The notes beneath the pieces are model-generated. The model saw nothing but the letters and a program-made list of their open reading frames with translations, had not been told where the DNA came from and ran no database searches. Both the position numbers and the translations under genes were made by a program. From positions 72,416,001 through 72,480,000 of the forward strand of contig NC_059432.1 of the NCBI RefSeq assembly GCF_021028975.2: a stretch of 64,000 nucleotides of DNA, in the 5' to 3' direction. Below, in pieces: positions 7,574-44,782 of this stretch (within the stretch, counting starts at the first letter, position 1; each line of letters opens with the position of its first letter). The stretch comes from Sphaerodactylus townsendi (taxonomy: Eukaryota).

Positions 7574-7825
<252 letters not shown>

Positions 7826-10165
7826 CTACATAGTCCCTTGATAAATCTTGACAGATTAGACATAATGGGCTCCCTTACAAGCAAAAAACCTTAAGATTTT
7901 CAGATATGTACTTTTACTTTCGATTGGGTTTTTTAAACAACGTTATTTTTTCTTCATATCTGGCATAAGAGTACCTTCAAAAGGAATGGAAATAGTTTTT
8001 CTAACCTTTATGACATGTGTTGATATTTCGCTGGACTATCTGTCTCCATACTTGCATTTCAAACCAGAAAGTGACCATCTGAAACTGGTTTCTACACGTC
8101 AGCTCACATAAATATAATGTTTTGAAAGCAAGTATATTTGAAACCTATACTTTTCAGCTCAGGTCTAAGCTTACAATTAAGTGAGCAGCTAAAGACTATA
8201 ATGATACATATAAAGCAGGGTAAAAAGGTAAATACTCTTCCTTTTTCTTGGTCATTTTCTTCAAAACATTTAGCTAATTTTCGCAAATCCCTTTCATATC
8301 CACCAACCCTCAAAATAACCCTACACGCTTCAAATAGCACAGACTAGTAACACAATTACACTAATCTTACTCAAAAGTTTAGAAACATTGAGTTTAGAAA
8401 CATTTAGTAATACAAAAGTTTGTGCATCTGATCTGTAGCAATGGCTCCTATTTCTTCTGGAGGGCCCCTTAAAGATCACTGACATTGCAACTGCTTTTTA
8501 CGCACAACATGCTAGATTCAATCTCCAGCATCTCCTGTTAAAGGATCTGTGACGGCAGAGCTGACAAGTACCCCTGATCTGAGATTTCCATTAGAAGTTG
8601 CTAGTCAAATGCTAAATCATTCTTAGTATAAGGTGCCTTCATATGTTACAACTCTTGTTTTAACAATCCTGGCAGAATGTATCCAAACCTGTTGTGCTCA
8701 GCTGCCCTTTAATTCCATAAGCAGTGCGTGGAGCGACTTCTCTTTCCAACCTCAGCTGGAAAAGAGAAACTTGCTGCAGATATCCTGCAGATTCAGAATC
8801 CACTATTACAGACGTGCAAATTACACCATCCATCTCCTCCTTCATGGACAGATAGTCAGTCCCAAAGTGCTGTGTCCAGAGGAGATCTTCAAAGAGGGGC
8901 AAATTACTGCCCCCAGTCTTTTGAGCGCAGGAAAATGGTAAAGAGGCAACTTCCCCCCCATACCATTATTCCAAACTCAGTCAGGCTTCTGGAGTTCTAA
9001 AAATGCCTTTTCCCACAGCTGCTCTGTGACTGCTGGTCTGGAGAACCCAGATCAACCAAGTAAAAAATGTAACATGTAGTTTGGCCTTGGGCTACAGGGT
9101 TCCACATGAAAGGATGTCCACTGACTGGCTAGACTGATCCTCCAGTTATTTAAAAGACTGCTATGCCATCTTTCCATCAAATTCAGGTTCACCAGGGCAG
9201 TAAACTTTAAAATAAAACATTAAAACTTTTGAGACATTAAAAAGGCCTTTAAAATAAAAATACATAAGATAGTTAAGCAATCAAATAAACACAAAACAAA
9301 TAAATACACCAACACACAAAGACCTAATGAGCAGCCAGAGGCAGAAAAGCCTGAATGTTAATTCCTCACAGAGCCTGGGTGTATGAGTGACAGGCTGGAA
9401 GTAGGTGGAGTTTTAGAAGAAGTTAGAGCTTCTGACAGGATTAGAAAGAATTCAACTCTGGGTTCCAGAGAGAATCATTTTTAGTGTCTGTGAAAGACCT
9501 GTAGTGTTGGTGAGAAGAGAGTCCTGGGGGAAAGTGTCCCTACTCTAGCCAAGGAGGGAATTTACTTCTAGGGAGAAAAAAATTCTAGCACAGGTTCACA
9601 GAGCAAAGCTAGTTCATTCACTTGACAGAACTGAATGAACTGAAAGTGAAAGAGTTGGTATCACAGGAGTATTAACTAGTCAGAAGGAAAATTTACACCC
9701 CAGGTGAGAAAAGAATTCCCTCCCCTAATTCTTTAGAAGGATTTACTTCCAATGCTGTGAAGTGACTCTAAGGTTTGGGATGACTGAAGAGAAAGGGAGC
9801 TGGGAGAATACTCCTTCCTATATAGTTCATATGGCACCAGAGTTAACACATGAACACTGAGTGCTACCTTGGGTTAAATCTGTGAAATATCTTGAAAGTC
9901 TTATCATATTTTAAAGCAACTGCGATCAACTGAAATCTTAGCAATCTGCCAAGGACCATTTGTGCTGAACTATGAAAAAAACCCTTCATACTTGTATATA
10001 AATCTGCTTCTTTCTTTATTACCAATATTCCTTCCTATCCTATTAACCTGAAGTGTTTAATAAAATTCTACTATTTATTTGTGAAACTTTAAAAAGCTTC
10101 TTGTGTGGGTATGTGAGGTAAAAAACAGAGAAAGTGTTCCATAAACTGGTTCATTTATTTTAAAG

Positions 10166-11438: not shown

Positions 11439-11625
11439 CTTTCTCAGTGCCGGAGAAAATAGAGATGATTTTGTTCCTAGGTTTCTTCTCTTCGGGCACA
11501 GAAGGCAGGGGTTTCAAGCTATGATTAGCACACAACGGGTCTTTGCCTCCTGAACTGAAAATAGTACTGCTCATCCGAACAGGTGGTGCTGGGGGCTTGT
11601 CTTCAAGTTCTCCGTTGTCAGACAT
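11439..11625 (-). CDS. PAK2: PAK2 first coding exon (exon 2; whole exon 11439-11649 including 5'UTR)
   Basis: Translates MSDNGELEDKPPAPPVRMSSTIFSSGGKDPL...IISIFSGTEK, the PAK2 N-terminus; polypyrimidine+AG acceptor at 11650-11651, GTAAG donor at 11434-11438; 187 coding nt, phase 1. Confidence 0.98.
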
Positions 11626-13819
11626 GATACTTAATGGCTAGACAACACACTGAAATGAAAAAGAAACACATTTAGTCTGTACAAATACATCAGTGTAATA
11701 CAACCATCTTACATCTTGTTTTCTCTCCTCTCCTCTTCAATCTCTATGCCAGAGTCAATGCTTTGCCATCTAAAATTTTCTATGGAAGATATCAAGATGT
11801 TGCATATTCAGACAGGCACTGTCCTTGCATATTCAGACAGGCACTGAAACTATTCTGCATGCTTTGTTTTACTGTCCCTTTTATTTGGAAATTCAAACAA
11901 ATACTTATTTCTTTTAGTAAACAGGACAGGGCTTTACGATTCTGCAAAGCTGTTTCTTCTCTGGAATAATTCCAATCTTGAAATGAGTGGGAAAGCAGTG
12001 AAGGTTTTGCAAGACACTATAAAGCTGCATCAAGATAAGACTGGGAGATAAATTGTTGTTTATTTTATCTGTAATGTGTGATTATGGCTTACTCTTAATT
12101 TTGCTTATAGTTTGATCATAATTATTTAGTATGTTGTATATGCCAATAAAAGTTTTCAGTCTTTTCTGTCAATCTGTGTCTTACACCTCTAAAATTATTC
12201 TAGGGGAAACAGACTTGAACAAGCTCAAGGACACTGTGAGCACATAAGATGAAGAACTTAGGGGTCCCAGACTTGGATGATATGTGTTTCCCTTCTCCAG
12301 AGTTATGTATATGCAATCTTTCCATTATTCTACAAGACATCATTGGATGGACACACAAGATTTTTCTCACCCTACTGCAAAATGAAAGGCAGCAGCCTTG
12401 TGAGGGTCCTTTGAAAAAAATGAACTGAAGACTGAGGGATACCTTGCAGTTTAGTATCTTAATTTCCGTGTTAACATTTTTTTACAACCGGCAGGGGGCT
12501 AAAAGCTGATTTATTCCCCAAGGCTTACAAAGTCTTGTAGCCAAAGCAAACTTTTTAATCACACTTCCAATTGCCAATCAGTAGCCCTGCTGGGCCAAAG
12601 CCCCACCCAGCCCCATCATTTTCTAAAAGCACTTGGTAGTCTCCAGGAAAGATGTTGGTAGGGGCTATAGTATCCATATGCATCACATTGGGGGCCCTGA
12701 ATAAAACAAAGGGCATATTCTAAGCTCAGTAGGGATACCATTTTTTCTGGTATTTTTTGGATTTTAGCCTGAAAGTTTCCAGAAAAGCCAAAAAAAGCCA
12801 AATAGCCTTACCAATAAATGGGGTTTTCTTGCTTTTTTTCCCAGATATCCAAAAATGTCCAGCTCCATTAAAAACCATGGGCTCTGGGGACAGTTCTGGG
12901 CTTTGGGGACAGTTTTCAAGGTAGAGGGACCAAATATGCAGCATTGTTGCAGGTGAGTCTCCTTAGAACCCCCAAGTTTGGTAAAGGAGATGCCCCATCT
13001 ATCCAATGAAGTTTTCAATTGATTCTGAAAGATTAATGATACCCCATTCTGAATGCATTTTCTCAATGGACCAGAAAGACTGAAATAACATTTGCTGTTC
13101 CTTAACTTGTTTCTTGTTTTGGTACGCAAGGTCTGTCTAGTTCTTGCATATGAAGGAATGTGAAGCAGAAGATTTATAAATTATACTGGAATTCTAATTA
13201 ACTAATACTGCAGATTGCCTAAAAGGTACCTAAAATAATATTTCAAAATGTTGCCTTGAAAACATTGTAAGATAGAATAGTTTAGATGACTGTTCATTTT
13301 CTTAAACTGTTCAACTTTCCCATCCAAAAAACTAAAAATGATAGAAAGTTTCCTGTATCCCTCCTAATCATTCACCTGAGAATCTGTCTTTCCTCCCTTT
13401 AATGAACACTTTCTCCCTGCAAACTCATTCATAATTCCCCTGATCCCATCTCACCCAAATCAGTACAAAACCAGGATTAAAAGTTATTTAATACAGGATA
13501 CTGAAATACATTTTAAAAGGCACTTAAGCTCAGAGCAGGAAAATATTGCACTAAATAATAATCTCTCTCCAGTGATTTTAAACTGAACCAATTTGCATTT
13601 TATTCAATCCAGCTGCCATGTTGTATTGAGTACATTCAAACCAGATCATTTCTTCAGAGAGAAGCGATTTAATAATTCCAAAACTCTAGTTCCTTTCCAC
13701 CTAATATTCACTATCAATAAGATGAATACAACCTGTATTTGGTCATGCACCAAAAACAGATTCTGAACTTGCAAAATTCAAAGTAAACTATTTGGTACAA
13801 GAACCCTCAAGGATCTCAT

Positions 13820-14340
13820 TCCATAGAGTGAGAATGACAAAGAAGGCATGGGCTCTGGTTGACACTAGCTGGGCTAGAGTAAGTGAGGGAACCACCATGA
13901 AGCGGCAGCCCGAGGGCCACAGCTGGGGCATGGAAATATGGGGGAGGAGGTGGTCCTTTGATAGGTGACTTTTAGATTGCGGACTTTAAAGGTCACAACC
14001 AGCCCCTTGGACACTGAAACAAGCTATTTTAAGATACAAAAGAGATGTGCCTAACAGCTAGGCCCTGACAATAATCGGGATGTTTTCAAGGGCAATCCAA
14101 CACAGAGTGCATTAAAGTAGTCCAAATGCAAAGTTACAAAAGCATAGGCCAGTATGGCTAGACCAGTTGTGTCTAAGAAAGGAGAGGTGAACCAATGAAA
14201 AGGATAGAAAGCACTCTTGGCAACTATCCCAGCATGCTTGTCAAACAATGAAGGATTCATGAGTATCCCCAAGCTCTTAAACTTGGGCCCTTTCTGAAAT
14301 GAAGCACTACAAAAAAAAGAGGCTGCACCATCCCTCAACT
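13820..14340 (-). mobile_element. L2-type LINE fragment
   Basis: LAILAYAFVTLHLDYFNALCVGLPLK, typical L2 ORF2 C-terminal motif; related fragments at ~10480-11050, 25680-25915 (LDPFQSDFRSGYGMEMAL) and ~46360-46620. Confidence 0.7.
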
Positions 14341-15700
14341 AAGTTCCCCAGCTATCACTAGAAAGGCTAGGCTGCTGACATTGAAGCCAACATTTTACAC
14401 TTTGACTTAATGTTAATGCTGGAGTTTAGGTGAATAGCTGATATCCTACTATGACAACAGCAGTCACATACTTTAGATTAAAAGCATTTATATTCACACA
14501 TTTTAAAGTGCAGGTTGAAACTTCCCCATCAAGAAAGGATGCACAGGTGAGAGAACATCCTTGATTTCTGAAACAGTGAGCACTATAATTAGAAGGGCAC
14601 AAATCAGAGAGCTGACCTTTAATCGAGCAACAATTGCTCTGCGCTGTTTAATGTGAGAGACAGAATCAGTTTCTGCCCAGTTTTCTTAGAGGGGCAGGAA
14701 AGCTTTGGCCTGTGTCTAGACAGCTGGCCCTCCAAGGTAACTTACTTGGCTGCTGTATGAAACCAGAAACAAGACTAGATGGACCACTGGTTTGATCCAG
14801 CAAGACTCTTCTTGTGTTTTCAATACACACAAGTTAAAAGTTTGATACTTCCATCTCTCATACAAAAAAAGCACTTTTCTTTTTGAACTGCCGGCATCCA
14901 GATTTCAAATACTTGTATACTGCCAGCCAGCCAGGCTGCCTTATGCTTTGTCTTTTTTCAACTACAGAGAACTCTCGCCTGTGTCTCAGTGTTTGACAAA
15001 ACTGACCTCTTTCTTTATTGAAGTACCACTGAAAAAGTCTTTTACCAAGACTGCTCATGGTGTAAGAGGAAATCCTCTTATGTATAGTCTTCTTAAAAAC
15101 AGGAAGTGAATTACAGCAAGCCATTTCCAAACACCAAATTAAAATTATGTACAAGATGTAAGAGAATAATGCATAAAAACACAAAATATATCCTTCCTTC
15201 TACATAGCGGCAATGGAATATCTGATTGATTAAGTACTGTCTGACATCCGAACACGCACTTTACATCAGGCAACACAAATGTGTTGAAACAAAACTACAA
15301 ACTAACTATATTAAGAACAGCATTTCTCTAATAGTAGAGAACTTTAGGGCTAGACCAGATTGTCTTAATATCATGGTAAGAATTTAACTGTCTGGATTAC
15401 TAACTATAGCTTTTACTGCCCCCTTCCCCAATTAGTCACTCAATTTCCTGAAGTTCCTAAGCTTCATTCCATTTGTGAAAGGGCATTTTTGCATGCATGA
15501 CATGTCCACAGATTCCTCTTATCCACTGCAGACCCCCATTTTGTAGCCCACACTGCTCCGAAATATCCACCAACCCACAGGAGCTATCTTTCAAGGCACA
15601 CAGCAGATTGCACTAGGAAGGCAGAAATGGTACACACGATGCATAAGATCTACAGTGCTTTTTAGGCTTTCCCGAAACCTTTTCACTGTCTCTGCAGACA

Positions 15701-16684: not shown

Positions 16685-18800
16685 GGTACTTACCTGTAAA
16701 GGGTTCTTCTCATCTGAGCAGAAGAGGACATCTGGGTGTTTTCCAGTAATCAGTCAGGGAGGCAGGAATAAATTGTTCTTTTGCCTCCTAGGTCTGCTGG
16801 AACACACCCACTTCTCCTCCAGTTCTGGAAACTCCAACAAGCAGTCTCATGCTGCAAATTGGAAAACCAGTGCTCTCTCCCTGAAATTAGCACTTAGAGA
16901 GGACTAGCGAGAAAAAATAAGGAAACACAAAATACAAAACACGAACAGAAGAAGCAGAAGCAGAAGAAGAGTTGGATTTATATCCCCCTTTCTCTCCTGT
17001 AAGGAGACTCAAAGGGGCTTACAATCTCCTTTCCCTTCCCCCCCTCACAACAAGCACCCTCTGAGGTAGGTGGGGCTGAGAGAGCTCAGAAGAACTGTGA
17101 CTAGCCCAAGGTCACCCAGCTGGCATGTTTTAGAGTGTACAGGCTAATCTGAATTCCCCAGATAAGCCTTGTGCCAGTATAACTACTCTTTGGGGTGCTG
17201 TGGATTTGGACAAAAAAGAAAGAAGAAAAAAATTCTTGTTGCCTATGAAAGGCTTAATTAATCTTAGGCACGAAGGTGGGATCAGTTCTGAGAACCACCT
17301 TATCCTTGTGGAAGATGCATAAGGACGGTTTAACAGACAGAGCACTCAATTTGGAAACTTGTCAAGCCGATGTAACTACTATTAGAAAGATGGTCCTCAT
17401 CCTAAGATGTTTTAGGGAAATGCCTGTCATTTGCTCAAATGGGGAAGTAATGTCTGGTGGGCTTGTCTTTGAGATGAGACACCTTTTGATATGAGAATGT
17501 AATGTACTCCAACTGTCTAGAATAGATCATGGACCACAGAAGCTATGACTGCCACCTGCCTGTGAAGTGTGACAAAGCAGAGACCAGAATCAAATTCATC
17601 CTGAAGGAAGCCTAAGACGTCCCTAATGTCAGGAGCAATGGGATCTACCTTTTTTCTCCAACACTACCTAATGATGGCCTTCCAGGGGGTGTTATAGCTT
17701 CTCCTTGTAGATGCTCTTCTGGAGTTGAAAATCAAGTTGGTAATCTCCCAACTGTTATTTCTTGCGAACAAGATCCCCCATTCAATCTCCACATGGTCAA
17801 GCTCTACCACTCTGGCTCTGTGTGACATATAGGTCCTCGATGTAGATCTTTGGTCTGAGGAAAGAATGTTGAAAAAACTATGGACATTGTGGCCACCAAG
17901 GAAGTACCAGGATCACCTCCACCTTCTCCTCTTGAATTTCTTTAGGAGTCTGGGAATAACCTGAAGTGGAGGAAAGGCATACAGAAGTCCTAGATAGATA
18001 ATGCAGCCATTGCTTCCGCCTCTCAATGATGAAACTGCAAAAGAAATCCAGGTGCTTGGTTGTTCAGACTGTATGCAAAAAGATTTAGGACTGGTGTTCC
18101 CGTTTGTTGTGAAATCTGAAGGAAGGCCTCCCTCTTAGAAACCATCCTTCGGAGAAAGCTGTTGTCAACTCAGCCAGTATGCCTGGATGTTGTGTTTCCC
18201 CTGAATAAGCTCTGCAAGTATGGGCAACAGGTGTTAGTTCTACCCAGGAAGAGATCTACCCCACTTCCTTTGAGAGCATTGAGGATTTGGACGTAAGAGT
18301 CATCCAGCTGGGGTTGGAAGTACTAAAGCACTAAATAGATGGCGCTCAGTTCCAGAAGACTGAGTGGTAGACTGGTCTTGAGAGACGACCAGACACCCCA
18401 GACTGGAAGATCCTCCAACATTGTCCCCCAGCCTAAAAGGCAAGAATCCATGAAAATCTGTTTGGTGGGGCTGATCTAAAATGATTTCCCTTGATTCAGA
18501 CTGAATCACTTGATCCAGGAAAGGAGGCTGACCTTGACTGGACAAGGCATCACCAACGACAAGTGAAGTTTGTTGATAATCTGAAATTGGAAAGGGCTGA
18601 TGAACCGCTGAAGGGATCTGGAATGGAAGCGTCCACATTAAACCACTTCTGAGCAAGCAATAAGAAGTCCCATCAGGCTGCAGGATAGGCGGGAGCTCTT
18701 CCTGCTGTTTATGACAGCTAGCATCTGCTCTTCAGCTTTAGCTGCTTCTTGGCTGGAACAAACAGTTTGCACACTGATGCATCCGACAGAAGCCCCAAAT
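16685..18800 (-). mobile_element. Decayed DIRS1-like (tyrosine recombinase) retrotransposon, interrupted by a SINE
   Basis: Minus-strand translation near 17900-18100 gives P.LNLFA and GLLYAFPPLQVIPRLLKK..VILVLPWWP, motifs typical of the DIRS RNaseH/MT region; multiple frameshifts; boundaries approximate. Confidence 0.7.
16950..17168 (-). mobile_element. Squam3-like SINE (3' part) inserted in the DIRS remnant
   Basis: (GAA)n tail + gagttggatttatatcccc...; matches other copies. Confidence 0.85.
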
Positions 18801-29011: not shown

Positions 29012-29285
29012 AAGTACACTCTAATCTGGAGAACCGGGTTTGATTCTCCGCTCTGCCACTTGAGCTGTGGAGGCTTATCTGGGGAACCAGATTGGCTTGT
29101 GTACTCCAACACATGCCAGCTAGGTGACCTTAGGCAAGTCACAGCTCTATGAAGTTCTCTCAGCCCCACCCACCTCACAAGGCATTTGTTGTGGGGGAAG
29201 GGGAGGGGAAGGAGCTTGTAAGCCCCTTTGAGTCTCCTTACAGGAGAGAAAGGGGGGATATAAATCCAAACTCCTCTTCTTCTTC
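29012..29285 (+). mobile_element. Squam3-like SINE
   Basis: Matches the other four copies. Confidence 0.85.
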
Positions 29286-31821
29286 CACATTGCCCTTAGC
29301 TCATTTGAGGATGAAAGGAATAAACTGACAAACAAAAATGTTTTAGTGGTATAACAGAATCTGATAATTCCGTGCTCCCATGAGTCCAAACACTCAGAAA
29401 GTTACCTATGGCAACTGTTCGAGAATATTTTTTTTCCAAACTGGATAGCTGTTCTGAGAAATCTGCAATTTTCTTCTAATGGTAAGTAAAGTACAAAATT
29501 GAGCAGAAAAAACAGTATTTTCCTTAAAAGATTCTGTATCATAGTAAATCAAAACAAACAATCTTATTCAAAATGAATTTTGCATGAAATTGCCTATGTA
29601 TTTAGAAAATTTGTGGCGAGTTATCTTTTTGTGACTCAAATGTCTTGACTTCTGGGCAGCCCATGCAAATAATGCAACATCTGCGGCTTTCAGTTTTACA
29701 CCTCTGCAAAAATATTCACACAGAGGCAAAGCTGTTTATTTCTTATCACAAACATCTAAAACTGTGCAACAGTTGGCATATTCTATACAACTTGAATAGA
29801 TCTCAGAATCAAATTTTCCAAGTTTTTCCAATCTTCTGTTTTGAAATTAAATTTTAAAAATTCATTCTAAACTGTTTCATTGCAAATATATTTCAGGGCA
29901 ATGAAGATATGTTTAAATACTGTAGCCTTGAGAAGAACATGGTCATTTCACAGCTTGCTCTTACCACAGGCATTCTGCTTTAAAATCTGCATTCTAGAGG
30001 TCAATTCAGTTTCTGTCTACACTATTCTTCCTACATGCCAAGAAGGGCAGAGAGAGATTCCCGAACCACTCCCAGCCATTACCTGAAGAACTGTGTGAAA
30101 TGCAGTCTAGATCATGACCCTATCTTTGCAAATAGAAATGTATATTATATCAAAGCACAATTGACCACGTAGGTAGGAGTAATGCCTTCTCAACATAGTT
30201 ATGAAAAGCTGAATAATTAACCCACAAATATCCAAGACTCAGTCCTATATCCTTTTCCATAAACCACAGGAGCAATTCGGAAGGTCAAGTATAGTTTTAA
30301 ATCAGTTTTAAGGTTCATCAGATCTTGTGAACTTACACTTCCTGCTAGCTCACACAGACAAACAGAACGTGGAAAAACAGCTTGAAGTTAAGCAAAAAGT
30401 CCAGTGCTTCTGCTTCATCAGCTGGCAATAAACACATTCTATCTGTACACAATACTCCCTAAGAAATAGAAATTTATATTATATCAAAGCACATATACAC
30501 ACTAGAAGGAGCCTTCAATCCCCTACTATATTTCAAAGCTTAAATAATAACCTACCATAGAACTACAATTACTTTAGATTCTACCGTAAGAACTCTCCCT
30601 AGCACAGTAAAGTTAAACATATTATTAGTGTTAAATTATAAGACTGGAGGGGGGACACATTACCAATAGCTCCAGTAACCCTGTGCAAAACTGCCAATGC
30701 ATGTGGCTACCCCCTGGAGAAACCAACAGTTATGCTACCTGCTCACCTTCTCAAGGACCTGAGGAATGGATGCAACATTTTCAACTGCGCCCAGCAAAAT
30801 GGAAGAGTGATGGGGGTAAAAAATTCCCTTCTTTCTCTTCACAGAAGGTGATCAGGATCCAGGCAATACTTTCCTATTATTAGAGAATACGAGTAGATCT
30901 GGCAAAGTGAAGGGCTCAAAATGCTGGTGACAGAACATTTTCACCAAACCCAAACCACAAGCAACTGGGGTTCGAGGAAAAATCCCCACTTGACAACACC
31001 ATTTCTGCTTCATGATCCAATTAACAAAAGGGGGAGAGAGGGGACACAGGCAGCGCCATATCACCACCTGCACCAGCATCTCCCTCCCTACCATGTAATA
31101 CTTAGTAATAGCAACAACTATATTTGGGTTGGGTAGATCTGCACTTGAACCCTCCCTCATCAGGAAGCTCCTCTCAGGACCCTAAACTACTCATACACAC
31201 CTTAACCTCCCTCGCTGAGATCCCTGGGGGGAAAAAAAAGCATAAGGCATCCAGGAGAAAAAAGAAAGAAAGAACATTAACACCAGGACCCGGAGTTCAC
31301 AGCAACAACGGCAACTTATCTTACCGGTAGTAATAATAACGTCTTTAGAAACTTCCCCCAAACCTCGCCACTTCTGAAATGGGACGGTGAGGATTTCTTG
31401 CTCCACTTGTGAGCAGGAGAAGGCGCCGTTACCCCAACGAGACTGCGATGAGGAAAAGTATCCGGGTGCAAATGGGGGGGGGGGGTGTCCCTAGAGCTGG
31501 AGGTGCGACCTGAGCCCCTGGGTGCCCCTCCAGTTCCAGGTAACCCCAAGCCTCGGGCAGACACAGCGGCGGCCAGGCGGCCGCACTTGCCTCCACACGT
31601 CCTCAAGCCACCTGCCCGCAACCCACCCGTCAGGGTAGCCACACCTTCTCCTCCCTTCCCTTCAGAGGCCCTGCAGTCTCCTTCCGAGACCTCCTCGGCC
31701 GCTCGACTCTGCAGAGAGCCCGACTGTCGGGGCCCCGGCAGCGCCCTCTCCCGCCCTCCCATCAGCGCCTCTGGGTCCGACCCTCCTCCAGCCAGGCCCC
31801 CTCGAAGCCCCCCCTGCTCAC

Positions 31822-32030
31822 CAAGCACCGGCCCGACTTCTCGCCGCCGGCCTGAGCACCGCTTGAGGGCAGGGCGCGGCCTCCTATAATGGCGGGGAGG
31901 AGGACCCACCGGGCGGCCTGAGGGTGAAGCGGAACCGCCGCGCGTGGCCCAGCCCGGGAAAGGAAGAGGTGGAGCCGGGCAGGCGGCTCCTGGTGCAGAC
32001 AGCGGCGCCGAAGAGAGGGGGAAGGGAGAG
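31822..32030 (-). other. PAK2: Probable PAK2 non-coding exon 1 (5' end approximate)
   Basis: Inside the CpG island ~20 kb upstream of exon 2; TTG|GTGAG donor at 31817-31821 on minus; PAK2 normally has a non-coding first exon. Confidence 0.65.
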
Positions 32031-32435
32031 AGGCGCGAAGACTACAGTCCCCGTCATGCATCTGGAGCGCTGCGGCGCAAGGCTTCCCCGAGAAGGGATC
32101 GCCGCCGCAGGTCTTTCCCGGAAGAGAAAATGTGGCTGTGTGTAGTTGGGCATTTGATCACACGCGCGCGCCGCTCCCCCGCTTTATTAGGATAATGTGC
32201 AGATTCTCTCGTTTTCTTATGACTACTGTTGTTAATTATTCTCCGCTGGATCATGTCCCCATTCCTTATCTCTTACAATTTAGGCATCCTTAGGACTGTT
32301 TAGCAACCATGTTGACATATTTATTGTTGCACCGACCAAAGTCAAGGAAAACCCAAGAAACAACTTCAATAAACATAGCGGTTCGCTGAAAACTTGCGGT
32401 TTTAAAACCGAGGCTACCTTTTCCCGCGGAAAAAA

Positions 32436-32490
32436 ATGGCTGACGGAGCAGGAGCAGGCTGCTCGAACGAGACAGAGAGCGCTTCGAAAG
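32436..32490 (+). CDS. Exon 1 of transposase-derived gene (MADGAGAGCSNETESASK)
   Basis: aaaATGG strong Kozak context; 55 nt ending AAG|GTGAGA, a consensus donor; phase 1 matches the acceptor at 33360-33361 and reads in frame into the 450-aa ORF. Confidence 0.8.
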
Positions 32491-33361
32491 GTGAGAAACA
32501 AGGGGGGGGGGGGGGAAATGCTATAGGGGCTATTTTGGAAGTGAAATATAGTGGAGGGAGGGGAGAGAGGGGAAGATGAGAAGCCTCCCCCCTCTATCAG
32601 CCCTTACCAGTACTTCGCTTGTGTATGTGTGTATGAAGAAGAGAATCATGTACGCTGCTTAATGTTTGCCTGGAGTGGCTAACTGTTTGAAGAAGACTCC
32701 TTTTACAGCTGCAAAGACATGAAGTCCGGGGGGGGGGGGGTCATATTGTATTTCCTTCCTTAGGAATTAAGGGTGGAAAAAAAATTGCAGACTACTGAAC
32801 ATCTTTAGCCTGTCAGTCATGCTGATCCTGTGGCACAAAGGCAAGGCATTGCATCCCCTGAGGTTCTACCCTGCCAAATCTCCAAAATCTACATTCCCAA
32901 ATCTCCAGGAGATCGGATTTGATCTCTCAGATTTGATTTCGTTTTAAGACAGTTGAGAACTGTCTTCAACTGATTCAAGGCGGCAATTGAAAGTTTCTCA
33001 TACCCACTCTTGTCAGGGAACCTTGCTGAGTGACATACTCAGCATGGCCTATTTCATTTGTTTCTCCTTCAGACTTAATGATTACTTTCATGTTATTAAT
33101 TGAGTCAATAGAGATAAGTGTTGGAACACACTATTTTCATTGCCCAGCAGCAGAACCTTTTGTAATCTATACAGGTTCATAAATTAGCCTCTTAGACTAA
33201 ACTTCCTTTGGCTTGGTTCTGGTATTATGTTCCCTAATCTTATATTCTTAATGGGAAAGGCAATGTGTGTGTGTATGCATGTGCGAAGCTCAAACAGAAA
33301 CAGATTGGCTATTATGGCCACCATAGTGTTGAATAATAATTTCTTTTCAAATGATTTTCAG

Positions 33362-34749
33362 ATGCTGCAGAGACCTCTCCTCGCTGTTACTTCAAATTGA
33401 ATCGCAGAGGTCGGACAATTCGAAGCCAGACTCAGCAAGTAATCATGAATGTGTATTCGCGCATTAGGGAAGAGCACCCAAGCCTTACTGTCGAGGAATG
33501 TGTAGAAGAAACCTCGAGATTAACTGGCATGTCTTCTGCACCCATCTACAGGGCAAAGAAGCTGTGGCACACAACAGGTGGAGTTCTTCAGACGCCAGGC
33601 AAGAAACGTCCTCGCAAATCCGGGACAAAGAGAAGAGATGTGAAGTGTGACAGTTTTTCTCGCTGCGCAATTAGAGGTATTGTACATAAGTATTTCTTCA
33701 GAAACGAGCCACCAACACTGAAGAAAATACTCAATGATGTCAACAGCGACCAGGATCTACCTTGCATTTCCCAAACAACACTGCACAGCATTTTGAAAGA
33801 CATTGGCTTTGCCTACAATCGCAGGCATAAGGATTGCACTTTGACTGACAAGCCTGAAATTATAGCTTGGAGGCACCAATACCTGAGAAAGATTCGACAG
33901 TTCCGTTCAGAGGGAAGGAGCATTTTTTTTCTGGATGAGACATGGGTGAACACAGGACACACAGTCCCAAAATGTTGGCAAGATCATGCTGTGAAGTCAG
34001 CGAAGGGTGCATTCCATAGGGGCTTGTCTACAAGACTCAAAGATCCACCTGGCAAGGCCAGTCGCTTGATTTGTGCTCACTGTGGGAGCGAGGAAGGCTT
34101 TGTGGAGGATGCATTGCTTCTGTTTAAGTCGAAAACAACAAGCGATTACCATCAGGAAATGAATGTGGACAACTTTGAGAAATGGTTTGCCGAGTTGCTG
34201 CCTAAGCTGCCTCCAGAAAGTGTAATTGTGATGGATGACGCCTTTTATCACTCAGTGAGGTCCGAGACGATCCCAACAACTAAATCTGGAAAGGAAACCA
34301 TTAGGACATGGCTAACAGAGAAGGGCATCTCTTGGGACCACGAGCAAGTGAAGCCTGAGCTACTGCTTCTGGTGCAAAGGGAAAAGCACAGATTTGTTCG
34401 GTATAAAACAGACGAGATGGCTGTTGCTGCTGGGCATAAAGTGCTTCGCCTCCCTCCCTACCACACGGAACTGAACCCCATAGAATTGGCATGGCGTTAC
34501 ATAAAAGGACATGTGGCACTTAACAATAACACCTTTAAACTGGATGACGTGAAGAATTTATTCGTGGAAGGAGTACGTGCAGTGACCCCAGAGATGTGGA
34601 GCAGTTTCATCCAGCACGTGATGGAGAAGGAGAAGCAGTTCTGGGATCTTGATTTTCTCCAGGAAAACAATGAAACTTCCTCAATAAAGATCTCTCTGGG
34701 GTCAGATTCTGAGAGTGATTCCTATGAGAGTGAGGATATTTATGAATAA
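33362..34749 (+). CDS. Exon 2: intact IS630-Tc1-mariner DDE transposase with DD82E spacing (Sailor-like); spliced product 480 aa
   Basis: Uninterrupted ORF; HTH-like N-terminus, NLS-like PGKKRPRK, motifs FLDETW (D 33934), VMDDAFYHS (D 34234), LPPYHTELNPIELAW (E 34483); 82 residues between second D and E; acidic Ser-rich tail; ttttcAG acceptor; AATAAA at 34745, 34791 and 34810. Confidence 0.92.
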
Positions 34750-37716
34750 ACACAAGTAATTTCTGTTAATAAGTGAATGAACATTTAATTAATAAATCTG
34801 CCTGTTTTGAATAAAAAGTGTTGTTTAAACCTATTTTAGTTGATTAATCTCATTTAGCTTAACCCCATTTCCTAATTCCTACACATCCAGTCCCAGCAAG
34901 AACCTTTCTGTTGCTTCGTACTGTCCATATTCCATACTCTCACTCTCTGCTCCTTAGAGTTCAGTTCAGCATTTTCTTTTTTTATTCACCGGAGGGGGTG
35001 GGGGTGCAGAATCCCACTTGCTATGAGGGCAGGTTCCTTTTATGGCTCAGCCTGGTTTGGCTGGGGACCCCTGGGAGGAAGACTCAGATGGAGAGGTGGG
35101 GACAGTTTTGGTTCCAGATTCTCAGGCAGAGCAGTCAGTAATTCCTGCAGGACCAGAGGCTCAGGCAGAGCATTCAGGCTGGGATCCATAGCCAGGTCCA
35201 AGCTCTGAGATTTTCCAGCCAGGATCTAGTTCTGAGACTCTTCAGTCTCTTGATACTAAGCCAGAGGGGCCCCTGCTAGCTCTGTCCCTCCCCCCTCCTC
35301 CCAGTCTCCAGAGCCCCAGGAGCAATGCAGGAGGAGACTGCATGTTAGCAGCTATGGGGCAAGCTGAATTGCAGGAGCCAGACTAAACTAAGCCAGATAC
35401 AAGAGGTTATTGCACTATTGAATTGTTAGGCTGGATCTAACCAAGAGGTTGCAGCTGAGCTAGCTTGTAGCAGCAACATTGTGGTTCAGTTTTCAGGTCA
35501 CTGTTTCTGTTTCTAGCCTTGTCTTGGTTCTAGACTCTGTGTACTCATTAAATGACTAAACCCGCTAAGAACTGTGTCTTTGGATGCTGAGGACCTATCT
35601 AAAACAGTTCCCTTTGACATCTACCATCCCTCAACGCAGTAGCCACATAACCATCTTCTGGTAGGGTGGGAGGAAGATGATGGTGAGAATACAGCAAAAT
35701 GGTGTATTTGGAAATATGAAAAATTCACCAAACCCCCACCCACCACCCCAAGAAGCCTCTGTTTTTTTATGCTGACCCCTGTCCAATTAGATCCAGTTAC
35801 AGTTCAAAACACCATCCGCCCCAGTGCCTGTGCTCTGAAAAATGTAGGTTTCTGCCTGGTTCTCCTCACAGTGCCATTGTATGGATAATATTGGGAAGAC
35901 AGAACTATGTATATGGCCCGGAGTTCCTTAGATGGAATAAAAAACCAGTAGATTTGCAGTTGGCACCTGGAGTTCAAACACATATGGCCCTTGCATATAA
36001 CAGGGCACTTAAATGGTAAAGTGCAAAGTTTTCAAATAGCATTTTATGCTAATTTTAATAACAGTTTACTGCTGAAAAGGTGGGATGGGGAGGGAAGGAA
36101 GAGTAGAATTATGATCAAAATGATTTAACAGCCAGATCAAAAATGAAAGGCCCCAACTCCCAAATTTCTGATGTCAAATTGCTTTTGCCAAAGCAAAAGT
36201 TTGTGCCAAAGCCCTGTTGGAATAAAAAGTAGGATGCTGTTTCTGTGGGACTGACTAACACAAACAAGTTGCATCTTCTCAGAAGGATCCTGTTACTATT
36301 TGACAGCTGATCCCTCCTTTTGAGGTTTCACAGAGCTGCCAGGGACAGGTCACGGATAAACCTTTTCTTCTGGTGACGTTCTTTAGGAAGGGCTTCAAAG
36401 ACTCAGCCGCTTTCATCCAAGTGGCTGCCTTGTTAAAGATAAAAACAAAAAAAGGCAAGTGCCCAGTTTTATTGGTTAATAATACAACCACAAAGGCCAA
36501 AATGTATCTCTGACCAGGATTTTGTGCACTCTGGGCTTCAATTTTCTACCTTACCGGCTTTTAATAGTCATACAGGACTACCATGAGCTTAAGACAGTGA
36601 ACCTACATCCTTCAGCTACTGGAAATTCAGCTGTTCTATTTTTCAGCAGCTTATTGCCCATGTAACTATATAAACCTCACAAGGGCTAAAAACTTTTCCT
36701 TTTATGAAATGGAAGCTGAGAATTCAAGGAAGGTTAAATCTGTACCTAACACCATTTCAACTATTATTCTTTTTTGCAGTCCTGCAGGCTCACAGCTCTG
36801 AATCTGGTATTTGCAATTCACCCATCCCATTATCTGTGTCAATGCATTTAAAGTAATGATTCCCAAAACTTTTTGAATTGTAACCCCCTTGGCTCCCAGG
36901 CTACATACCTCCCCACCCCCCACCCCCCCCACACACATGAACACACCTCTTCATTTAGCATTTGTGACAGCAAATTGATTTCTGTTCTAATTGATACCTG
37001 CCAGGCCATATTGACAAAAGTTAGGTCTACACTCAAGTGAAAGTAATGGGTAGACCTGGCCTCCACAGAGGACAGATCTACCCAATGCTCCTTAATGGGG
37101 GATAACCAGCCCTCCAAGCGACTGCAGTTCTCTTTGTGATTCTTCAGAGATGTCATATTGAAAAGGAAAAAGACATGTGCGTGGTATTGCCACGAAAAAC
37201 AAAGTTTATTGATTTAATTTTTATATTGTTTGGACCATCAGCTGAATTGCAAGCACAGGAAACTCCTGGTAACATTCAGCAAATGGCTCTGGAGGCTACT
37301 GAAGCAGACATAAAATGGTGGGTGCTAGAAACACTAGGACCCGCAGAGCACTGCTCTATAAAGAAGGTCCAGAAGGAAGTAGTAGCATGTTAATTGATAG
37401 TCGCCCTTGGATTTTTTTGTTGTTGAAAATGGTATAGTCAAGGTGAAGAAAATAAAGGCCTGAAGCAAATTACTCATTCCACATTAGATATGTTCCACTG
37501 CATACAAGATTGTATTCACTGGCCTCTGCGAACCAAATATAATTGATTCAACATCCATGAGTCATTGCTAACATAGAGAAAGCAGTACACACTTTTCTTC
37601 AATGATAATCAATGACCAAAAAGCATGTAAACATTTAAAACCGCCCTTATAGATACAGTTGCATAGGTCCAATATTTGAGGGAGGAGTCCCCAAAATTCC
37701 TGTAAGATAAACTCTA

Positions 37717-41511: not shown

Positions 41512-41670
41512 TCACAATGAGCTCTGAACAAACAAGAAGTCTCCATGCTTGAATAAAGCAAATAGAATGAGGCCAGAGCAAAATATAGTGGTAACAAGAG
41601 TCCCTGTGCATACGAAGGTAAGATGATGTTTGAGCCCAACTGGTATCTGCAATTTCAGTTCTTGGTTTAT
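41512..41670 (-). CDS. PIGX: PIGX last coding exon (TM helix, stop)
   Basis: INQELKLQIPVGLKHHLTFVCTGTLVTTIFCSGLILFALFKHGDFLFVQSSL*; six coding exons total 762 nt = 253 aa + stop. Confidence 0.95.
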   Translation of the reverse strand: MNQELKLQIPVGLKHHLTFVCTGTLVTTIFCSGLILFALFKHGDFLFVQSSL

Positions 41671-42801
41671 CTAAAAGAAAAATACAAATTAAAAGACAAA
41701 CTCTTAATTGCAATGTTTATTTTATATAACTCACATTTGAATACTATTTCTTTTTCATGTGATTTTTATTGAGCCTTACTACTGCAGCCTATCCATCTGT
41801 TTCAGCCCTTTCTATTTTAAAAGGTTCCCTGTTATCAACCTCCATCAATATTCAGATCTTGCATCACTGAAATCAGAATATGGAAGAGAAACATCTTCCA
41901 TAAATCAGGTTTTCCATGTGGTAACCCGAGCTACAATCTTAAAAATCAATGTGAAACAAACTAACTGATGCACAGTTAGTACCCTTGGCTTGGACCCTAA
42001 ACTTCTGTCCCAAGCACATTTATATCTGGGTGCTGCAGAGGCAGACTTCCATTGTGGTATTTGTCACCTCTGTGCTAGGCACTTGGGACTCACAGAAAAA
42101 CATCACATCTTGATTAATGGGTGTCAGCTCTGTGTACCTCACACATACTGGCTATGCTGGTCTTGATTAACTGTTACTAGATTATTGGATTTTATTTGAA
42201 GGTACTGGTTTCTGTGCTCTATGTCAATATGAAATCAGATTTTCTATAGTTGCCTGAGCTTTGTATTCATGGGAGACATGCCTTTAGAGCACGAACTCCG
42301 TGCTTTGTTGGATTCTTTTCTGTACAGAAAAGAACGCTTTGATATTTTCCCTACTGAGGTTTGAGTTTTTTGTTCATACCTGGGCAAAGAGACTTAAAGA
42401 TAGATTATCAAGCTATAAGAACTGTGCAAACGTAAGTGCCTGAAACCAGAGAAAGCAAGCACCACAGGGGACTACCTCTACAGTGCCCAAAGAAAAGTGA
42501 ATGCAGAGCAAAAGTACACAGTCTACACCCAAATTACCTCAGGATTGGATCCAAACTAGATTTTTCAAAGACAGAATGGAATTTTCCCCCTCCCCATCCC
42601 ACTATATTCCACTGACCTACACAACATGCTGCTCCTGCGAGATGAGTGATTCTGATTAATTACATGAGGGATGAGTATAAGAGGAAGCAGTGGAAATTAC
42701 CAATTTGGTCTGGATCTAATCTATTCTCAAGGGACTGAACTAAACTACTTTCACAACTGTTAGGACAATGCACAAATATATTTTGGGAATAATCAACGCA
42801 C

Positions 42802-42902
42802 AGCTTGGAACCTCACGCTATCCCAGTGGCAGTTTTGCTTATTCTTCAGGGAACATGGTCTTTCTATTTTGGTTTCTTTCAAACATTCTGTTGATAGGAA
42901 GG
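42802..42902 (-). CDS. PIGX: PIGX coding exon 5
   Basis: (S)FLSTECLKETKIERPCSLKNKQNCHWDSVRFQA; conserved C..PC...C.W pattern; 101 nt, AG/GT. Confidence 0.92.
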
Positions 42903-43165
42903 CTAGGAAAAAAAGAAAGGAAAAAAACACACAAAAATCAGACTCTGGAGATATTGAAAATAGTTTAACTTTAAATTTTAAGTACTACTTTCCTCGATTC
43001 AGATTGCCTGCTTAGGTCTCTCCCTCATAATTCTACCAAAATATATGATTCTTCCCCTCCCCCATACACGCACACACAGATTTATAATTATAAGGTGTCT
43101 TTTTAACTCTTGTTCCAGTTGAAACCCCTTCCTCATCCTCAAAGCAGAAGGTTAGTGATTCTTAC

Positions 43166-43379
43166 ATTTCTGACAATGGATCAATATTTCTGGACTCCTC
43201 AGTATGGCAGAGATTTTTTCATCAACCTCTGCTGGCTGGTGATACCTGCAGTGAATAGGTAATATTGCTCTAAAACAGGAATAGCATTCAGGATCAGGTT
43301 TCATGTAAATGAGAACATCAATTTCAGTGGCTAAATACTCAGGAAGTTCCAAATCTACATAATCAGCAGTCACCAAAGC
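43166..43379 (-). CDS. PIGX: PIGX coding exon 4
   Basis: ALVTADYVDLELPEYLATE...LPIHCRYHQP...PEILIHCQK; 214 nt, AG/GTAAG. Confidence 0.95.
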
Positions 43380-43628
43380 CTAAACACAAAGAACAAAAAC
43401 ATTATTAGAAGCACAATTCGTACCAGCTTTCATCTATCTCACTGAAAAGCCCCATGGCTGATTCCACTGTCATATTCTGTATTTGTGCCTTAACAATATA
43501 AATAGAGGTGTAGTAAATGAAAAATGTATTTTCTACTAGGAATGAGGGAATAGGTCATAGGGGAGGATGTTTGTGGCAGGACAAGATAAGAACCGGCTGA
43601 AGCTAGTTAGAGGTTTGTAACTCCCAGT

Positions 43629-43729
43629 CAGTGGTGGGATTCAAATAATTTAACAACTGTTTGTTTACAAGCACCATTTTAACAACCGGTTCTGCCAAAG
43701 TGGTGCAAACCTGCTGAATCTCACCACTG
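43629..43729. mobile_element. hAT MITE
   Basis: TIRs CAGTGGTGGGATTCA / TGAATCTCACCACTG; imperfect 8-bp TSD ctcccagt/ctgccagc. Confidence 0.75.
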
Positions 43730-44195
43730 CTGCCAGCCCATTTCACTTATTCATTTTGGCTAAAGGGGGAGTAGCAATTGGAGTTCTATGTCAGAAATGG
43801 GCTGGGAGTTACAAACCTGTTGCTTATTTATCTAACGTACTAGACATAGGGGAGGACTATTTCTTCCCTCCGCAAATCGAAGTTGCTCACATACTTGTGA
43901 AAGATGATAAATATTTCAAATATTAAGGTTACTTGAGCCTCAGTAACTTACACATTCAAAATAAGTTTTCTTCAAGCAAAGAAAAAGATCAAATACATAA
44001 ACTTCCACTGGATTAAATCCAGTTTAGGCTACTTACAAATTGATGGTACGGCACAAATCTATCTGCTTCCAACAAAAATTAAGTGCTAGCATGCCATCGG
44101 AAACATAACGGTGTATATAACCATTGGAAGATGTTTCGTGTCTTTTTTCAAATTACATGCTCTTGGCTGAACATCAATCCAAAGTCATGCATATG

Positions 44196-44385
44196 CATAA
44201 AGTGCTGTAAAGCTACAGCTGACTTTTGGCAATCCCAGCAAGGGACTTTCAAGGCAAGTACTTAAGCAGAGGTGGTTTCCCATTGCCTTCATCTGCAGAG
44301 TCTTCTTTGGAGGCCTCCCTTCCATGTACTGACCCTACTTAGCTTCTGAGATCTGACAAGATCGGGCTATGCCATGCCATCTTCT
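44196..44385 (-). mobile_element. 5S rRNA-derived SINE-like repeat
   Basis: cttagcttctgagatctgacaagatcgggct resembles the 5S internal promoter region; related pieces at ~60160-60210 and ~61985-62082. Confidence 0.55.
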
Positions 44386-44404
44386 CTCCCACCCAAAATC
44401 ATAC

Positions 44405-44546
44405 CTCAGTGATATTGTGTTTATTTAAAGATGCAAGTTCATAAGGGTCCACATATAAGCCTCTTGGAAGATCAATTTTAACAGCCACCATGCAGTTTCT
44501 CATGCCTTCATCAACTGTACCAAGTGTTACCCTAGTCACAAGATCC
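44405..44546 (-). CDS. PIGX: PIGX coding exon 3
   Basis: DLVTRVTLG...DLPRGLYVDPYELASLNKHNITE; 142 nt, AG/GT. Confidence 0.95.
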
Positions 44547-44641
44547 CTAACATTAAAAAAATAAAGACAAATGAAAAGCTGTTTCAATGCCTGATAAATT
44601 CATACCAAAGATTTCAAGTAAACAGTCTCAAAAGAATAATA

Positions 44642-44782
44642 GGCTCATTCCACACATGCAGAATAATGCACTTTCAATCTGCTTTCAGTGCTCTTTGAAG
44701 CTGTGCGGAATGGCAAAATCCACTTGCAAACAGTTGTGAAAGTGGTTTGAAAACGCATTATTTTGCGTGTGCGGAAGGGGCC
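44642..44782 (+). mobile_element. MITE (PIF/Harbinger-like), copy 1
   Basis: Imperfect TIRs GGCTCATTCCACAC / GTGCGGAAGGGGCC, ATA flanks; second copy inverted at 60819-60959. Confidence 0.75.

Follow-up and report, generated by a model that had tools for sequence, protein, structure and literature searches.

In the genome of the gecko Sphaerodactylus townsendi, a 64,000-nt stretch of contig NC_059432.1 (NCBI RefSeq assembly GCF_021028975.2, positions 72,416,001 to 72,480,000 of the forward strand; hereafter the window, with positions counted from its first letter) carries an intact, spliced and transcribed gene for a full-length transposase of apparent Sailor type. The gene lies between the 5′ end of a PAK gene and PIGX. 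In the explanation that we consider probable, it is an old, immobilised Sailor-type copy at the edge of the PAK2 CpG island that has been preserved under purifying selection as a co-opted gene kept by the host. It is thus a reasonable but unproven candidate for a host-used gene, and four related intact copies elsewhere in the genome bear on how it arose.

Gene model

An open frame runs from 33355 to a TAA at 34747-34749, a total of 461 codons, and by our own estimate the chance of that many stop-free codons is about (61/64)^461, or roughly 2e-10. The listed open reading frame (ORF) begins at a TTG, and the first in-frame ATG of the 461-codon frame comes only at 33445. A splice acceptor (...ttttcAG) stands at 33360-33361, and an ATG-initiated 55-nt coding exon (aaaATGG...AAAG|GTGAGA) lies upstream at 32436-32490. 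The joined product is 100% identical to P0001, the RefSeq “uncharacterized protein LOC125437708” of S. townsendi (480 aa). When P0001 was mapped back by tblastn, residues 1-18 fell at 32436-32489 and residues 19-480 at 33361-34746, both at 100% identity. Searches were made with this spliced product, and the exons were checked singly. A first-pass annotation made from the letters alone had proposed a spliced 480-aa protein, built from a frame with no start ATG and no stops or frameshifts, a ttttcAG acceptor, a 55-nt exon in phase and three AATAAA signals after the stop. Its protein is letter for letter that of LOC125437708, which RefSeq already holds as an uncharacterised model, and each of the other elements is present, with the AATAAA signals at 34745, 34791 and 34810.

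All parts of the gene lie on the plus strand. Exon 1 as transcribed covers 32100-32490, with the ATG at 32436 and the donor at 32490|32491; the interval is covered by a contig of sequencing run X4, which continues upstream past 32100, and by reads of run X10. Within it, local alignments to three related loci (L002, L003 and L004, below) delimit a transposon-derived leader with the native start codon and the first 18 codons (32391-32490). The GT..AG intron spans 871 nt (32491-33361). The main coding exon (33362-34749) encodes a helix-turn-helix (HTH) region, a basic PGKKRPRK motif, the DDE_3 domain and an acidic, Ser-rich tail before the TAA. The 3′ untranslated region (UTR) with its three AATAAA signals is placed at 34745-34830, where transcript coverage ends at about 34829.

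Transcription and splicing

The stretch is present in nine sequencing runs from four studies, and the runs of three further organisms contain 12-56% of its words. In X4 (organism A, at least 99% identical), a contig of depth 222 joins 32488 to 33360, which after a shift of 2 nt is the GT..AG junction 32490|33362; the same contig covers 32100-32488 with 0 differences. Depth in X4 is 6-19 in the intron bins as compared to mostly 130-680 in the exon 2 bins, and coverage stops near 34829, just past the third AATAAA. From this depth profile and the junction, we infer that X4 is an RNA-derived run. Run X10 consists of raw RNA reads from organism B. Both exons are covered there, intron depth is zero, one read crosses the same junction, and reads span the locus-specific 5′ part as well as the junction. 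Many X10 reads are only 90-95% alike, with loose ends that match the paralogues, and the paralogues are therefore expressed too. A spliced contig, a junction read, a contrast in depth between exon and intron and a 3′ end after an AATAAA together describe a processed mRNA. Junction reads at 32490/33362 and 3′ ends near 34810-34835 were among the checks that the first-pass annotation had proposed for its model, and both are seen here.

One X4 contig (depth 69.5, between one quarter and one half of the depth around it) carries a minor alternative GT..AG intron within exon 2, of 113 nt and frameshifting (33439-33551, plus strand). The shorter “isoform X2” proteins of two paralogues begin just 3′ of the equivalent place. 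At 34529 the assembly reads A (Asn408), and the contigs or read covering the site in four runs read C (Thr), as in the paralogues; a run from the same organism shows C at a depth of 322/322. The A is either a private allele or an assembly error.

Assignment to the Sailor group

The protein matches Pfam DDE_3 above the cut-off (E=1.5e-8). Its winged-HTH match is weak, and Atlas groups the N-terminal 200 aa with IS630/Tc1 HTH domains. A sequence search against solved structures gave no match at E<=1. The catalytic triad, encoded within 33934-34485 on the plus strand, comprises D210 (33934-36), D310 (34234-36) and E393 (34483-85) and is invariant in alignment A1. Between D310 and E393, the latter in an NPIE motif, stand 82 residues, which is DD82E spacing.

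The Sailor superfamily has a spacer range of DD78E-DD111E, terminal inverted repeats (TIRs) usually of 18-57 bp that start with GT or CC, and a TATA target-site duplication (TSD), and it has been reported absent from vertebrates (Shi et al. 2021, PMC8533490). The spacer and DDE_3 domain of the window protein fall within this definition. Its length class (transposases of about 460-480 aa), an N-terminal paired-type HTH region and the arthropod origin of its closest relatives (aphid, tick and spider proteins) are likewise those of Sailor. Ends of the Sailor kind are found at the level of the family: L002 is a 1.9-kb element with TIRs of about 26 nt, and the 5′ end of locus L001 is TATA-flanked and starts with CC (TATA|CC). 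The window copy differs from Sailor in having neither TIRs nor TSD, in its intron and in its gene-like behaviour. By spacing and domain content, the family would thus be DD82E Sailor-type within the IS630-Tc1-mariner (ITm) group, and its relatives in the tree are unnamed arthropod proteins with the same spacer.

A precomputed Pfam family, PF27940 ‘C21orf140-like’, matches the N-terminal third of P0001 (window 33362-33900) and that of its relatives, arthropod ones included, which raises the possibility that the vertebrate C21orf140 family itself derives from a DNA-binding domain of Sailor type. A literature search for a link between C21orf140 and transposases found none.

Five intact copies in one genome

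A protein database search returned five intact gecko copies including the window gene, with 72-83% aa identity and the other four on other chromosomes. In P0002 (L001; 569 aa, 83% identical to the window protein), the transposase exon is joined by splicing to KRAB exons. P0003 (L002; 469 aa, 79%) is intronless, P0121 (L003, LOC125438901; 479 aa, ~80%) is spliced, and for P0122 (L004; 461 aa, ~73%) a contiguous ORF is present. The nearest paralogue is only 86% identical in DNA. After the gecko copies, the next matches are arthropod proteins with 42-48% identity, and the matches listed include no further vertebrate. The first-pass annotation had put forward a candidate new gene; four paralogues and an existing RefSeq model show that it is neither alone nor new to the databases.

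A tree built with 27 arthropod relatives places all five gecko proteins in a single clade (support 100/100), which has a long stem and is nested among arthropod sequences. Within the clade, L002 groups with L004, and the window gene groups with L001 and L003 in an intron-bearing subclade (97/90). The nearest neighbours of the gecko clade in the tree include tick (Ixodes, Rhipicephalus) and spider (Araneus) proteins and no insect protein. These neighbours are a possible hint, at the level of the phylogeny, at the route of the original horizontal transfer.

The L001 gene, LOC125428705 (CM037616.2, L001:12841-18308), joins KRAB exons (12841-14575; KRAB in P0002, E=2.9e-18) in frame to the same acceptor as is used by the window gene, and this splicing skips the transposon 5′ terminus at 14747-14933. 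L001 is a KRAB-Sailor host-transposase fusion of the KRABINER type. P0002 is the only such fusion in the family, and the window gene, with its transposon-derived exon 1, is not one.

Some repeats were seen in passing at these loci. A SINE-like repeat of ~270 bp occurs once in the window (29020-29285) and in 3-6 copies per 20-28-kb paralogue locus, at 74-95% identity, and one copy is inserted right after the L001 stop codon (18313-18604). A long (GTT)n microsatellite lies at L003:10125-10185, just inside the LOC125438901 intron.

Origin of exon 1 and the intron

Window 32391-32453 takes in 45 nt of leader and the first 18 coding nt. Local alignments place it on L002 9959-10018 (z=6.1), on L003 9986-10059 in the exon 1 region (z=9.3) and on L004 (z=6.7). 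The 1410-nt ORF of L002 has no interruption, and its first six residues are identical to those of the window protein. The contiguous ORF of L004 has the same start, and a different first exon is used in its RefSeq isoform. The layout of L003 matches that of the window gene: its exon 1 is homologous, its intron measures 1.78 kb and its acceptor falls at the same codon. L003 also keeps the transposon 5′ terminus above exon 1 (9667-9852 compared to L002 9753-9943, z=16.5). L001 also keeps its 5′ terminus, TATA-flanked and starting with CC (14747-14933), and no exon 1-like sequence was found in L001. Given the homology of exon 1 in L002, L003 and L004, the exon-intron layout comes from the transposon lineage and was not built at PAK2. 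An earlier proposal that the host had supplied the first exon and start codon consequently falls: leader and start are homologous to those of the TIR-flanked, intronless L002 as well as to L003 and L004.

The intron has a history within the family. Window 33166-34817 matches L003 11653-13281, and window 33213-33332 matches L001 16588-16703. The last ~195 nt of the intron (33166-33361), with the polypyrimidine tract and the CAG acceptor, are homologous in all three loci, and the acceptor is conserved in alignment A2. Since L002, L004 and the arthropod relatives are without the intron, it is a derived insertion that marks one subclade, and the alignments suggest that the acceptor arrived with the insertion.

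Two other origins were considered and rejected. The intron tail (33080-33365) is not a second copy of the leader, as it scores z -1.6 to 0.6 against L002, L004 and the window exon 1 region. Nor is L002 a retrocopy, since it has TIRs, 250 nt of leader homologous to sequence upstream of L003 exon 1 (z=16.5) and no poly(A) tract behind its stop.

Element ends and mobility

Inverted-repeat searches of the window over 31500-36500 and 32000-35300 gave nothing beyond shuffles and no convincing TIR pair, as had been stated in the first-pass annotation, and family termini sought out to 37500 gave no match. Upstream of 32391, transposon homology is not significant (window 32100-32395), and the 5′ limit of transposon sequence lies uncertainly between ~32180 and 32391. 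L002 is the member with both ends, with 26-nt TIRs at 9752-9777 and 11617-11642, a 14-nt perfect core, a total element length of 1891 bp and a TA at the 3′ edge; we estimate the chance of such a 14-nt core in 2.3 kb at ~0.01. Among the 150 kb examined the TIR core occurs only in L002, and a match to it with 1 mismatch at window 55588 shows no further similarity. On the 3′ side, the match to L003 runs out at 34817 (68 nt after the stop codon) and that to L001 at 34880. With neither TIRs nor TSD, and with a nearest paralogue 86% identical in DNA, the window copy is 5′-eroded and immobile.

Further downstream, a flank at 35607-36454 (plus strand) is common only to the L001 locus, collinear and in pieces of 73-83% identity; no other copy was found in the window or in L002-L004. 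The ends of L002 enclose only 1.9 kb, and L003 has no more than 68 nt in common with the window after the stop codon; this flank therefore probably lies beyond the element. In that case, segmental duplication would have produced the window and L001 copies, and the later constraint on them would be at the host level.

Signatures of selection

Among the five copies, pairwise ratios of nonsynonymous to synonymous divergence (dN/dS; NG86, 442 ungapped codons) are 0.13-0.21, with dS of 0.45-1.0. For the terminal branches, changes were assigned by parsimony and compared with a neutral expectation conditioned on the mutation spectrum. On the window branch 30/59 changes are synonymous as compared to 17.8 expected (omega ~0.42, p=6e-4), and omega is 0.33-0.53 over all five terminal branches. 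The chance of meeting no stop under neutrality is ~0.10 on the window branch and ~3e-8 for all five jointly, the latter being a simple product to which ascertainment applies. Noncoding sequence common to the window and L001 (intron tail, 3′ UTR and 0.85 kb of flank) is ~25% different, near dS (0.33-0.45) and well above dN (0.08). In organism D, which is a relative, a 1083-nt contig over 33711-34759 shows 59 differences (94.4% identity) and no gap in 1049 nt; in the listed subset of 31/59 differences, 15 are synonymous as compared to 9.7 expected (p=0.03).

Genomic neighbourhood and promoter context

A CpG island at 31536-32285 (GC 0.55-0.74 and CpG o/e 0.66-0.97 in 300-nt windows) marks the 5′ end of the neighbouring PAK-family gene, which was recognised by a CRIB motif exon at 7703-7744 on the minus strand (regex match in the six-frame translation). 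Synteny indicates that it is PAK2. On the other side, the 3′ part of PIGX (41512-44749, minus strand) is convergent with the transposase gene; it belongs to the gene with PF08320 PIG-X at locus L005, mapped to the window. The position beside the PAK2 CpG island and PIGX that had been claimed for the transposase gene is thereby borne out.

The island is likely a shared divergent promoter region. Starting in exon 1, an RNA contig extends upstream beyond 32100 and reaches the island, which makes it plausible, as judged from unstranded contigs, that the window gene uses the PAK2 promoter. The X4 junction contig, 1425 nt long, extends ~1 kb beyond 32100, and this extension, on an unstranded contig, is either a 5′ UTR reaching into the island or a transcript overlapping the first exon of PAK2.

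Three copies (those of the window, L003 and L004) have their starts at a distance of 0.3-0.9 kb from the CpG island of a divergently oriented host gene. The other two islands are at L003:8801-9550 and L004:8646-9395; their host genes are a CCDC90-like gene and one that carries no name. No such island adjoins L002, which has ends, and L001 uses KRAB exons instead. By rough estimate, such island-proximal positions make up at most ~1% of the genome, which would put 3/5 far above chance. It may be that only copies which gained expression were preserved or annotated, or that the element prefers such sites for insertion.

Proposed history and competing explanations

We propose the following history for the window gene. 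The arrival of a Sailor-type transposon at the margin of the PAK2 CpG island would date from an ancestor of several close relatives of S. townsendi. By then, the N-terminal coding region of the transposon would already have been split by the insertion that is now spliced out as the 871-nt intron. The window copy would then have lost its terminal repeats and most of its 5′ leader. The transposon’s own start codon and 18 codons would make up exon 1, with the remainder of the transposase in exon 2. The PAK2 island or its immediate surroundings probably hold the transcription start, and the mRNA ends at ~34830. The predicted product is a full-length transposase with the HTH region, a basic nuclear-localisation-like motif, intact D210/D310/E393 and the acidic tail, for which a sequence-specific DNA-binding or regulatory role may be suggested, possibly with catalysis retained. 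A broader proposal, that the dwarf-gecko lineage co-opted all five transposases, is one that we hold tentatively and at slightly less than even confidence. There, five proteins with full triads would be young, diversifying regulators or nucleases at several stages of domestication, coupled to host transcription in differing ways: bidirectional CpG-island promoters would serve three of them, KRAB exons would precede a fourth, and the fifth would still lie within its TIRs.

Several points weigh against a host-kept gene. In the protein database search, no homologue above 50% identity appeared in any other annotated vertebrate. The organism D contig is without flanks, and its orthology is suggested by a divergence of 5.6% compared to at least 14% for paralogues; the ortholog-type test it allows is weak (p=0.03 on 31/59 differences). 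The constraint could be at the level of the transposon and date partly from its mobile phase, and with omega at 0.4, roughly one third of the window branch may have been neutral, which leaves room for such a phase in recent times. S. townsendi also carries derived replacements at sites kept in paralogues and relatives, such as S279 and T387 beside the catalytic motif, and an intact triad in a full-length protein is also what is expected of a live transposase. As regards the earlier claim of a domesticated, lineage-specific gene born from a transposon, we can retain an intact, spliced, expressed and transposase-derived gene with signs of purifying selection; the host exon and the uniqueness have to be given up.

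Much of this would also suit an expressed relic, that is, an immobile copy transcribed only through a strong bidirectional CpG-island promoter, with its ORF intact by luck and by ascertainment, as annotation favours copies that are intact and expressed, and a dN/dS below 1 that stems from selection on the transposon lineage ahead of the insertion. The existence of a true transposon family with a TIR-bearing member (L002), the modest p value of the ortholog-type comparison, the far from negligible neutral chance (~0.10) of a stop-free window branch and the derived replacements at conserved sites all lean this way. We nonetheless regard it as unlikely, though still a serious contender, given that omega on the window branch is 0.42 and all five branches lie well below 1, that five stop-free branches are jointly so improbable under neutrality (ascertainment granted), that noncoding sequence common to L001, part of which is a flank apparently external to the 1.9-kb element, is ~3-4x more diverged than nonsynonymous sites, and that 1049 nt compared with organism D hold no indel. 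An autonomous Sailor that contains an intron, is still mobile and has its ends beyond the region examined would explain the intact triad, HTH region and nuclear-localisation-like motif, the 5′ terminus retained by two members of the clade and the 1.7 kb of similarity between the window and L001 past the stop, which could mean a longer element. It is improbable, however, when no TIR pair is found over the intervals searched, no family termini occur to 37500 and the window 5′ terminus is missing, when a nearest genome copy at 86% DNA identity speaks against recent amplification of this subfamily, and when the TIR core is confined to L002.

The version given in the first-pass annotation, in which a host exon and the antisense PAK2 promoter rescued a start-less transposase ORF as a single new gene, does account for an ATG at 33362 that is out of frame, so that exon 1 is needed for translation, and for a 5′ UTR that extends back towards the island. 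It is nevertheless very improbable, in view of the homology of exon 1 and leader to the transposon start in three paralogues, the occurrence of this exon 1/intron/exon 2 arrangement on a different chromosome, at LOC125438901, and the existence of five paralogues. An assembly artefact or contaminant, with an arthropod transposon misplaced in the gecko assembly, would fit the arthropod identity of the nearest non-gecko relatives. It is hardly credible against the presence of the stretch in nine runs of four studies, the X8 (32249-32425) and X4 (32100-32488) contigs that span the boundary between locus-specific and transposon sequence, and an identity to arthropod proteins that reaches only 42-48%. 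The reading that we favour for the window gene thus remains the immobilised, host-kept copy.

Relation to known systems and implications

Host-transposase fusion genes such as KRABINER have been described (Cosby et al., bioRxiv 10.1101/2020.05.07.082677). The gecko family resembles them in that an acceptor just upstream of the transposase body lets upstream exons join in frame, as LOC125428705 does with its KRAB exons. The window gene differs from KRABINER in that its upstream exon is the transposon’s own start with no host domain fused, and in that it retains the whole transposase, not only the DNA-binding domain. SETMAR, the primate SET-mariner fusion, likewise retains a Tc1/mariner-group transposase within a host transcript that is spliced, and the DNA-binding part is under selection. 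There a pre-existing host SET gene is fused and the catalytic motif is degraded, whereas the window gene has no host domain and an intact triad. The piggyBac-derived vertebrate genes PGBD1-5 offer a parallel as several independent, immobilised intact copies, some spliced to upstream exons and some with catalytic residues kept; their superfamily is another one, and their conservation extends across mammals or vertebrates, whereas the gecko family has so far been seen in one genus-level group. Spliceosomal introns in transposase genes are reportedly also present in mollusc Tc1-like elements (Puzakov et al. 2020, as cited in PMC8533490), but those are described as transposons, and the gecko intron marks a three-copy subclade without a complete pair of ends.

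The window gene is an ITm-derived, preserved transposase gene, and its added novelty is that Sailor had been thought absent from vertebrates. If it and its relatives are maintained by the host, they would be the first Sailor-derived genes in a vertebrate, and one genome would hold a rare side-by-side series of domestication stages (one copy that still has its ends, immobile copies beside promoters and a fusion to KRAB), whose early steps could be tested by comparing close species. If the window gene is only an expressed relic, it would still correct the published range of Sailor and show how transposon insertions beside CpG islands come to be annotated as genes.

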